Shown here one piece after another: positions 14,084-60,629 of a stretch of 64,000 bases of DNA. Location: NCBI GenBank assembly GCA_002189035.1, contig NEEC01000004.1, positions 4,216,001 to 4,280,000 on the forward strand, in the 5' to 3' direction. Source of the DNA: Utricularia gibba (Eukaryota > Plantae > Magnoliophyta). How positions within the stretch are numbered: the first letter of the stretch is position 1; every line of letters starts with the position of its first letter. The notes beneath the pieces are model-generated. The model did no database searches and was not told the DNA's origin. It saw only the letters and a program-made list of their open reading frames with translations. Made by a program: the position numbers and the translations under genes.

Positions 14084-17000
14084 TCAATGGAGAGCTAAAC
14101 TGCTAAAAATCCGCTTCAAACTTGGGCACGCCCCGCGTAATCTGCTCAAGTTTAGTGGAAATATCTGTGCCATGCCAAGAGAAATGTCAATACTTAGCAG
14201 CATGTTCAACCCAAAGGGATAAGAAGTTGTGGTTAGGTATCATTGTGTGAACCTTGGGGCAGAAGCGCACATCAAGAGTCTCCAGCATGTTGCATTGCAT
14301 AATGGCAGTTTCAACAGCTTCCTCATCAATATGACAAGACTAGAAGAATCACCGGGTCAAAAAGAAGCTAAGTGATGTATCACCAAAAGAGAAGCGGGCT
14401 GAAAACACACACCAGGGAGTCTTTTGAAGATAAGAGGGAGCAAACTGATGCGGCGTACCTGAAGAAAAAGGCTGGTCAATCTTGGGCAGTCGAGCTTGAG
14501 AATCTCCAAGGAGGTGCAGTTGCTGGACGGTTCAAGAAGCAATAAGAAACATATTGTGCATCAAAAGGATCGAGAATGGTGTAGGAGTTCAGAAACAGAA
14601 TACCTCAGGTTAAGAAAGGTTAAATTGGAACATGATAAATTGACTTCTTTCAAGTTTGATGACAGTGAAAGATTGAGCGCCGATAGATGAACACATTGTG
14701 CTGCATGAGGAATAGCCACCTTTTTTATATTGGGACAGCCAACACAGTTCAGGTTCTGCAGAAGCCGATCACGTCTAAAAAGCTCATTTTCCTCCAATGA
14801 CCCATAAAAAGAGTTTACTTCAGAGAGTCTGCCGCCCCAATCCAAGTCATGCATATTCACGCATCCGTTTAAGCTGACATGGGTTAGGTTCATACAACCA
14901 GCAAGCAGTTCCTCTATTGCTGACTGAGAGAGTGACCCATAGGACAAGTCCAGTTCACAAAGAGCTGGGAGAGCATTGCCCTTATACACGGGTTCGAGAG
15001 CCATGTCGCAGAGATACTTGCAAGCTTGCAACTTAAGAACCTGTAAAAGGTGGAAGAATCAGGATGGAAAGATTAGCTAAATTGCCTATAAGTAACCAAA
15101 TGCGCTCAAAAAAAGTTGGAAGACTTCAGATGATTCTCTGTTTCGTGAAGAGTGGAGTACCTTCAAGAACAAGCAGGAGTCATAAACAGGCTGCAAGTTA
15201 ACCAAAAATGTATAGGATAAATCAAGGTAAGTCAACTTGGAAAGGCAGTGCAAGGAAGACAGTCCTCCAGAACCAATGGAAGGGCAGGACATCAAAACTA
15301 GGACTTCGATGAGGGGGCAGGAACATGCGGTAGCCGATAAGCAGTCATCCTTCAGTTGGCTGCAAGTGTAAAGTGAAAAAATATAACAAGGAAAGAAACT
15401 CATCAAGATCTAGTTCAGATTGAGGGAACACTACTAAATACCTGCAGAAGGATGCATCTAATGATGTAAGAAGTGGGCAATATATAAACGCTTCTGACAG
15501 TACGCCACAGCCTTTAAGTTCAAGTGAAACCATCTGTGGTGCTTCAATGTGGAGCACGTTTAACTTTGGGCATATGCCTAAATTCAAGGAGCGAAGACCA
15601 ACCTGCAATAGATATTAAAAATATAATGAGTCAGGATCTTTCGGAAAATTTTCATTTGAAAATTCAAGCTCCCATCAATGACATGTTGCTGACTTACTGA
15701 AGAAAAGTATGCCTTCTCAAGATGATCACACCCATCCAACGAAGCATTCTCAAGTAATGGGCAGTTGAGTTTTACACAAGTTAATCCACGACAACCACCA
15801 AGTGAAAGGTTAATTAAGGACATACTTTGGAAATTTACTGATGTCAAACTCTGCAAGAAAAAGAACTTGACTTCAGATATACCCAAAAAGAAGCTGCCAC
15901 ATTCTAAAAATAATTAATGGAAAGAAATTTTGAAATTTGGGATAGAAATCGTGTGATGTACCTCGCAGCTGTCAAGAAGCAATGATTTTAACAAAGGGCA
16001 ACCTCCTCCTGTACTGAAAACCTCGCAGATGGAATTCGTTAGAGATTCACACTCAGTGAGGTCAACCTCTTCCAAGGAACGGCATTGCAGTATCAAGGTT
16101 CTTAGACTTTCTTGCTTTTGCAAGACTAATCTCTGCAAATAAATTCAATACATTTGCCTCAATGAATGGATACATGTCAATTTTGTGTGTGTGAGGATAT
16201 GCGAGTGACAATATGAAGTTTACCTTCAGTGCATGGGATGTGATACTTATTTTCAGTAGGGAAGGACAATTGGAAATATTAACTGATGACAGCATATTAC
16301 TTCTTAAATTTAGATCAGCGAATCTGAAAGAATAAAAAAAGGTTTCAGTTCATCCAAACAGCGAGTAAATTTTTAAGGCCAGCAATGAAAATTAGAACAG
16401 ACTTGCGGCAATGTACGAGCCGTATACACTTCAATCGTGGTAGATCCAATGACAATGATACCAACAAATTGCAATTGTCAAGCTCAAGGACCTATAGAAG
16501 ATATGTTACATGAGAAAAATCAGATTTTGCTAAACTTCTGGAAAAAATTAAAAAACAGTAGGCACAAAGAAATGCTTGAGCAGCGGCAATCAAACCTCGA
16601 GCATATAGCTATACGCAACAGCAGCCATTGAAGCTGATGTTATACCCTCGCAGCTATGAAGCTTTAGCACGGTCAGCACTGGCAGTCTCACAGACTTCAA
16701 AGGATAAAGTAAATAATAAGATGTAATTTGACTGGAGAAAATCATGATCCTTCGTTTTCTTGAAAGAAAAATAGAGATTGAATAAATAAAAACGTACTTC
16801 AAGAGATATGTTAGGGCAATATGAAGCATTGAGCGAATGAAGACTTCCACATGAAACAGAAATATCACGAAGTGTCTCATCACTAAAACATGAACAGTTG
16901 GACACATCTAAGGATTCCAACAATGGGCACGAAGTTGCTGCAGAGCGTATTGCAGCATCTGACATCTTGTGACATGATGCCAAATCAAGTTCGCGCAGAG

Positions 17001-59702: not shown

Positions 59703-60629
59703 TCACATTCCCAGCTCCAGCGACATCGATGTGGAGCAGCTCTTACCCTTTTCATCAGGCGCCGCTCGCCGGTCCTCAGACTTTGTGCAATCCATCGTTA
59801 CTCCGAACAGCCTCAGCCTCTTCACGGAGGCCTTTCCGTTCGCCGCCGTCCCGGGGTCCAGCGCCGGTTCTGTCGTTCGCGGCGCTGCCGGATGCTGCCG
59901 TATGTTGGCGATGACACTGCTGTAGCCTGGAGGAATTTATTGAGACACTTAAGAAGGCGGAATCAGATAAATCTTGGTTGGTGTGAAGAGAGCATTACCA
60001 TCGAGTAATAAGCTTGGGGTGTGGTACATGTGCTTGAACTGGGATCTGGAGGAGGGCTCGAGCAGAAGGGGGCTCCATGGATGAATGTGGGAATGGGAGC
60101 GGTGGAGGAAGGAGAAATGGTGAGACAGCGGCAGCGGCGGCTGGATCTCGAGGCGGCGTCGCCAGTCGATAAATAAACGGTCTCTCGAAACCCCGACTCC
60201 CCGTTGAAACGAAACGACGTCTCCGGCGTCCAGCTTCTTCTCCTTCACAAACCTGCTCATTTTTTGTTCTTGAGATCAGATCTCCAGAAAATGATGCAAT
60301 AACGTGGTGTACGTACCTTGTGTTAAAAAAAAATAGCAGTAACAAACCAAACCAAACCTGCTCCATCCTTTGGTCATAACGTAGCTCTGGCTGCTGTTCC
60401 AGTACGAGTACCGAAAATGCCATGGCTTCCCATTCCGATCTTCGAAGCTGAGAAGAAGCCCCTTCTCATTGGCACTGGAATCCAATGGAAAGTATTTTTC
60501 AGCGTACTGTTTAGGGATCACCAGACGGTTGAGTTTCCCGACGTCACTCGGCGTGACGACTTTGTCGAACATGTGCTCTTTCGACTTGTCGTCGACGGCG
60601 GTGCCGCCACCGGCTTCTAAAAAGTTCAT
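59703..60629 (-). CDS. NGA: NGATHA-like B3-domain (RAV family) transcription factor
   Basis: Exons 60629-60358, 60252-59999 and 59926-59703 give 750 nt (249 aa). B3 domain [34 protein letters not shown]...YVMTKGWSR|[15 protein letters not shown], repressor motif RLRLFGV, NGA-type C-terminus [15 protein letters not shown]. Confidence 0.9.

Follow-up and report, generated by a model that had tools for sequence, protein, structure and literature searches.

The minus strand of the window (the whole 64-kb stretch of Utricularia gibba DNA that was analysed) contains a B3 gene that we assign to the NGATHA class and for which a model with three exons is proposed, Table 1. The exons sum to 272+254+224 nt, i.e. 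249 codons and the stop codon by arithmetic on the model. Homology searches were run exon by exon. In exon 1 Pfam finds a B3 domain (PF02362, positions 1-67 of 101, E-value 1.4e-17), and the alignment shows that the domain continues in exon 2 up to the DWRRR motif, the same as in all homologs. An AP2 domain is absent upstream of the B3 domain: 20 residues precede it, and B3 is the sole domain that Pfam reports.

With exon 1 as the query, a full HMMER scan returned 872 relatives, and the top ones are all B3 proteins. The best named matches of the exon-1 open reading frame (ORF) are an Erythranthe guttata protein described as 'Os02g0683500-like' (93%), NGA1-like proteins, and Genlisea aurea (87%). 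Exon 1 is 82-93% identical to the NGA-class proteins (NGA1-like and Os02g0683500-like), versus 67-75% for the At2g36080-like proteins (NGA-LIKE1). When proteins are ranked across the three exons, the nearest are Lamiales NGAs of Phlomoides, Sesamum and Salvia, and Lamiales proteins of the NGA1-like / Os03g0120900-like type are the best relatives. The RLFGV and C-terminal motifs of exon 3 are in frame and align with the Lamiales NGAs. On the basis of these features, i.e. a B3 domain, no AP2 domain, RLFGV and a C-terminal motif, and a closer similarity to NGA than to NGA-LIKE proteins, the gene is classified as NGATHA / RAV class II B3 type. Neither the species' own model nor a transcript-derived protein came up when the ORF of exon 1, the NGA protein P0002 of Punica, or a profile of the Lamiales NGAs P0335, P0326 and P0343 together with the three exons was used as the query.

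With canonical NGATHA genes the locus shares the B3 domain without AP2, the RLFGV repression motif and the C-terminal KGK..S(L/M)xL, the nearest being Lamiales NGA1-like. It differs from them in two respects. The sampled coding sequences of the canonical genes are single ORFs, whereas two short interruptions are found here, and the predicted protein has 249 residues compared with about 310-430 in the Lamiales NGAs. A central block of ~70-90 residues is missing, including QMVFESVPVVQ, while the B3 domain, HPWSPL, RLFGV and the C-terminal motif are still present.

Table 1. Features of the NGATHA-class B3 gene in the 64-kb window; a slash marks a splice junction.
Feature	Position	Strand	Remarks
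NGATHA-class B3 gene	59703..60629	minus	ATG at 60629, stop at 59705-59703; putative three-exon model
Exon 1	60358..60629	minus	B3 profile positions 1-67 of 101; last two bases AG start the Arg codon
Upstream copy of the 11-bp repeat GAGCAGGTTTG	60353..60363	minus	six bases exonic, five intronic; holds the donor AG/GT
Putative gained intron 1	60253..60357	minus	105 nt, GT..AG, phase 2, 65% A+T
(GTTTG) x3.2 microsatellite	60343..60358	minus	5' end of intron 1; first unit lies within the upstream copy of the 11-bp repeat
Inner inserted DNA	60259..60352	minus	94 bp; single copy in the window
Competing internal donor AAG/GTACGT	60315..60316	minus	exon 1 longer by 41 nt, frame shifted; would leave a 64-nt intron
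CTGAT branch-point-like motif	60275..60279	minus	A 23 nt from the intron 3' end; overlaps the read-through stop TGA 60278-60276
Downstream copy of the 11-bp repeat	60248..60258	minus	holds the acceptor CAG/G; GAG/CAG tandem (NAGNAG-like) acceptor
Exon 2	59999..60252	minus	remainder of the B3 domain through DWRRR, and HPWSPL block
Putative intron 2	59927..59998	minus	72 nt, G/GTAATG...CCAG/G, phase 1, two in-frame stops
Exon 3	59703..59926	minus	KRLRLFGV repression motif, MDC, C-terminal NGA motif, stop

The first interruption lies inside the B3 domain and is bordered by the 11-mer GAGCAGGTTTG, which a repeat finder and a DNA search both locate as two exact copies 105 nt apart. These are the only copies in the window, where 0.02 are expected, and two or more copies were present in 0 of 100 shuffles. 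The donor junction (minus strand, 60370-60352) reads ...GGATGGAGCAG/GTTTGG... and the acceptor junction (minus strand, 60262-60240) reads ...AAATGAGCAG/GTTTGTGAAGGAG. Exon 1 ends with YVMTKGWS followed by AG and exon 2 opens with G, so that removing 60357-60253 rebuilds an Arg codon and the reading frame. The removal also brings GWS-R-FVKEK back together, and the junction is free of gaps in the alignment with each homolog that was checked. If the insert is instead read through, a stop is reached at 60278-60276 (ORF 60276..60629). The preliminary description had called attention to the exact repeat with its AG/GT, the 105-nt split of GWSR-FVKEK with the frame restored upon removal, and the stop that follows from retention; the copy number in the 64 kb, the homolog alignments and the read-through ORF agree with it on all three points. 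The GAG/CAG tandem acceptor (60253-60258, minus strand) arises from the downstream repeat copy, and use of its upstream AG would add one Ser codon.

To obtain a null distribution for the junction, all GT..AG pairs 60-300 nt apart on both strands of the window were collected. Among the 344 pseudo-introns with an AG/GT..AG/GT core, an 11-bp junction repeat is seen in one, the insert described here. One direct repeat of at least 11 bp that contains AGGT, with a spacing of 40-300 nt, is observed in the window versus 0.13 expected. Even for introns with an AGGT core, a junction repeat of 11 bp would arise by chance in no more than about 0.3%. At a rate of ~0.3% of the AGGT-core introns, some long junction repeats should be expected by chance among ~10^5 introns. 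No further repeat-flanked introns were identified within the window.

We consider that the insert is probably a real, newly gained phase-2 intron, spliced at 60357/60253. This reading is favoured because the gene is otherwise intact and conserved. No frameshift is present over the three exons, and stops occur only inside the two segments bounded by GT..AG. Over its first 73 residues the B3 domain shows 4 differences from the Lamiales consensus, two of them also found in other Lamiales. The insert itself has the features of a U2-type intron, i.e. GT..AG ends, a frame and alignment that are restored by its removal, AU-richness, and a branch-point-like motif within 18-40 nt of the 3' end. Its A+T content is 65% versus 49% and 43% in the flanking exons.

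The insertion could instead have disabled the gene. The 105 nt would then be retained, or cut mainly from the donor at 60316, leading to a truncated B3 domain or to nonsense-mediated decay, and the locus would be a young pseudogene or a null allele of one NGA paralog. The strength of the two donors speaks for this possibility, since 6 of 9 positions of the in-frame donor CAG/GTTTGG agree with the U1-pairing consensus, versus 7 of 9 in the internal donor AAG/GTACGT. The tract ahead of the acceptor, which is A-rich and not U-rich, also points in this direction. However, the stretch of 41 nt from one donor to the other is 54% T, and plant introns are recognised partly by U-richness, which favours the upstream, in-frame donor.

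The predicted protein also bears on this question. In addition to being shortened, it has His in place of the near-invariant Arg of WRFRYSYW (about 60415-60413, minus strand); among 393 homologs Arg is found in 359 and His in 2. The substitution could have altered a DNA contact, or it could reflect relaxed constraint. Taken together with the missing central block, it makes some relaxation of constraint possible. NGA genes function redundantly, and redundant genes would tolerate the loss of one copy. Against a disabled gene stand the lack of any frameshift, the confinement of every stop to two segments with GT..AG ends, the alignment being restored once these are taken out, and the conservation of the B3 and C-terminal motifs. 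On balance we regard a disabling insertion as unlikely.

If the putative intron is spliced, the gene output is predicted to depend on the choice between an in-frame and a frameshifting donor. The internal donor had been described earlier as one that shifts the frame, and with 41 nt added to exon 1 this is the case. That the two donors might act as a splice-controlled off-switch is speculation at this point.

To establish the ancestral state of the site, contigs from JGI/ENA metagenomes were scanned with a profile of 14 NGAs, and 80 plant loci were obtained. In 76 of the 77 loci with a YVMTKGW motif GWSRFVKE is uninterrupted in the genomic DNA, and the remaining one is cut by the contig end. 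The exact motif is missing in three loci, of which L073 is likewise uninterrupted, L078 ends short of the site, and L080 has diverged already ahead of it. In total, all plant NGA/RAV loci that reach the site (77/77, i.e. the 76 motif-bearing loci and L073) lack the interruption. Aligned at the DNA level, 7 homologs have a clean gap of 105 nt at the insert, and in L018 the identical 11-mer GAGCAGGTTTG occurs once, as an empty site.

The protein sequences agree with the genomic DNA. In the 40 top-ranked homologs, without exception, exon 1 aligns up to a residue X and exon 2 from X+2. Exactly 2 residues separate TKGW from FVKEK in all 378 motif-bearing homologous proteins. Deviant homolog protein models were examined as a proxy for introns, and none of them qualifies: they are explained by a 2-nt frameshift (P0115), contig ends and exon-skipping predictions. 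Since the interruption is absent from the homologous loci and proteins, the insertion is derived and the duplicated 11-mer is ancestral coding sequence. This is in line with the earlier suggestion that the duplication provides both the donor and the acceptor.

The 80 loci yield 59 distinct stop-to-stop ORFs, and in 52 of these the B3 domain and RLFGV lie in one ORF, most of which end in an LDL-type C-terminal motif. The presence of both in a single ORF in the relatives indicates that the canonical NGA coding sequence is intronless. Romanel 2009 found the B3 domains of the RAV family to be all intronless in Arabidopsis, rice and moss, in a family that also comprises class II, which has no AP2 and to which the NGA genes belong (PMC2688026). 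The preliminary description had put forward that RAV/NGA B3 domains have no intron here, which is borne out by this report, the 77 loci and the 378 proteins. It had also proposed a comparison of NGA gene structures in congeners and outgroups, and among the metagenome loci the site is uninterrupted in every one that reaches it.

The codon usage at the site was also examined. In the 77 YVMTKGW loci the Arg of GWSRF is encoded by AGG in 4; the others have CGN, except for one AGA and one Leu (CTC). AGG is thus rare at this position, and the AG/GT proto-splice site is itself uncommon here. The loci L018-L020 each contain the very 11-mer GAGCAGGTTTG once.

The repeat copies are identical at 11/11 positions. 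Of the 22 repeat positions, about 6 (TTG and GAG on the intronic side) are presumably free of coding and splice-site constraint. These free intronic sites are undecayed, and the donor is still the exonic GTTTG and not GTAAG-like, which points to a young event. From the undecayed intronic halves of the repeat we infer that the insertion is young.

A gained intron could alternatively be real but old, inserted in an ancestor common to other Lamiales genera or families, with the repeat kept by constraint. Such a history would be helped by the small number of unconstrained positions in the repeat. However, the copies are identical also at those positions, and the donor keeps its non-consensus exonic form without any drift toward GTAAG. 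Furthermore, no Lamiales protein model is anomalous at the site, a weak argument given that spliced models hide introns. We find an old gain rather improbable, though less so than the two readings that follow. A spurious 105-bp insertion in the assembly consensus is very unlikely, as a unique, non-repetitive insert with a perfect target duplication corresponds to no known pattern of assembly error. Finally, an ancient NGA/RAV intron with a coincidental boundary repeat, which might be suggested by the usual three exons of NGA-LIKE genes (PMC9266525), is the least credible of all and that gene structure was rejected as an explanation, given that the gene is of the NGA class by identity, that the interruption is absent from all homologous loci reaching the site, that RAV-family B3 domains are reported to be intronless (PMC2688026), and that such a junction repeat is so rarely produced by chance.

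Relative to its homologs the gene has an insertion with a duplication at its ends, removal of which restores the frame and the alignment exactly, and the remainder of the gene is intact. In the favoured scenario of a recent gain, an ancestrally intronless NGATHA-class B3 coding exon would have acquired a foreign segment of ~94 bp, and the 11-bp target GAGCAGGTTTG would have been duplicated in the process. The target would have happened to hold the proto-splice site CAG/GT because the Arg is encoded by AGG here. The duplication would then supply both splice sites, giving a 105-nt unit that starts with GT, ends with AG and can be excised exactly. Splicing of the new phase-2 U2-type intron would reconstitute GWSRFVKEK, the core of the DNA-binding domain that is otherwise invariant.

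Concerning the origin of the inner 94 bp, we would rank filler insertion during the repair of a staggered double-strand break first, non-LTR retroposition second, and a decayed DNA element, Mutator-like or other, third. The 11-bp flanking repeat, a filler without transposon hallmarks and the (GTTTG)x3.2 at the 5' junction are all features of double-strand-break repair, and (GTTTG)x3 slippage at one junction would fit filler repair of a staggered break. Retroposition would fit a target duplication of variable length and an A-rich or (CAAAC)n end adjoining the repeat. The 11-bp duplication would agree with this, and the repeat is adjoined by a short AACAAAAAAT end in the sense strand and by a short (CAAAC)n end in the antisense strand. 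For a Mutator-like element the duplication has an appropriate length (11 bp, where 9-11 bp is typical), and terminal inverted repeats are absent. The best pair in the inner 94 bp matches at 8/10 positions, a score reached by 11% of random AT-rich 94-mers from the window, and here too the first inspection, which had seen no convincing terminal inverted repeats, was right. No second copy, parent element or template of the inner 94 bp exists in the 64-kb window, Rfam gives no match for it, and the RNA fold of the insert is not beyond that of shuffled sequences (z = -0.11).

The event can be compared with several systems of intron gain. In Daphnia populations, Li et al. in 2009 reportedly described gains via double-strand-break repair with short flanking direct repeats. 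The putative intron resembles these in being a short new intron at an AG/GT proto-splice site, with a direct repeat that duplicates exon sequence and a filler without transposon hallmarks. It differs in that the host is a land plant and the repeat is longer (11 bp). Intron gain by double-strand-break repair has also been discussed for Drosophila, where repeats of at least 5 bp are no commoner at gained than at conserved introns (PMC3296678). It follows that only long repeats such as the 11-bp one found here are informative.

Introners, families of intron-generating transposons, were surveyed by Gozashti et al. 2022, and none were found in land plants (PMC9860276). As with introners, the insertion studied here has a target-site duplication that helps to supply the splice sites, and it forms a short spliceable unit. 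On the other hand, introners are defined by many near-identical copies, whereas our insert is single copy within the 64-kb window and lacks terminal inverted repeats. A further model, ascribed to Rogers, is said to explain intron gain by tandem duplication of an exon segment that contains AGGT, an RdRP gene in potato being a reported case. Both splice sites would derive from a duplicated AGGT there as well as here. However, only 11 bp are duplicated in our gene, and tandem duplication of an exon segment was rejected, as the 11-mer is all that is shared with the flanking exon; the inner 94 bp has no similarity to that exon and is an insertion. A search of the literature on intron gain in Utricularia found nothing relevant.

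The type of event, an insertion with a duplicated target at a proto-splice site, is known, and the instance in a NGATHA B3 domain appears to be undescribed. To our knowledge, land plants offer few datable gains of spliceosomal introns in which the sequence reveals the mechanism. In the present case the two halves of the event can still be recognised, namely the duplicated target that provides donor and acceptor and the foreign filler enclosed by it, and the insert sits in one of the most conserved, otherwise intronless DNA-binding domains of plants. If spliced, it would be a textbook case of how a proto-splice site and a small insertion make an instant intron.

The second interruption of the gene is also derived, as it is absent from the homologs, where the coding sequences are single ORFs. 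A CTGAT lies 36 nt from its 3' end, and there is no boundary repeat. BLAST aligns the 72-nt segment ambiguously with the NGNPCPPGSIVYLR block of the relatives, and it may be either inserted DNA or coding DNA that has become intronic.

The presence of this second derived intron in the same gene supports a broader and more tentative idea. Intron 1 might be one case of a lineage-wide burst of short introns in a compact Lamiales genome, brought about by small insertions with AGGT-containing target duplications; we hold this to be less likely than not. Such a burst may have made spliceable introns inside intronless coding exons, including those for the DNA-binding domains of transcription factors. 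If true, it would be the first for land plants, given the survey that found no intron-generating elements there (PMC9860276), and the lineage would let the rates and mechanisms of intron gain be studied in a flowering plant.

Two further observations were made. A 9-bp AGGT-containing repeat at 16028/15968 was considered as a signature of intron gain and rejected, as it reflects the leucine-rich-repeat periodicity of a coding sequence. It lies in an F-box/LRR-like coding exon (15960-16028, minus strand, 60-nt spacing; ..SICEV.. / ..DSCE followed by gt) and is a false positive for intron-gain scans that are based on repeats. Among the homologous proteins, P0152 (Erythranthe guttata isoform X2, 166 aa) is an annotated short NGA isoform that ends within the B3 domain, just past ..TFQRGLGD, and this hints at alternative splicing of an exitron-like kind inside the otherwise single coding exon of a Lamiales NGA.
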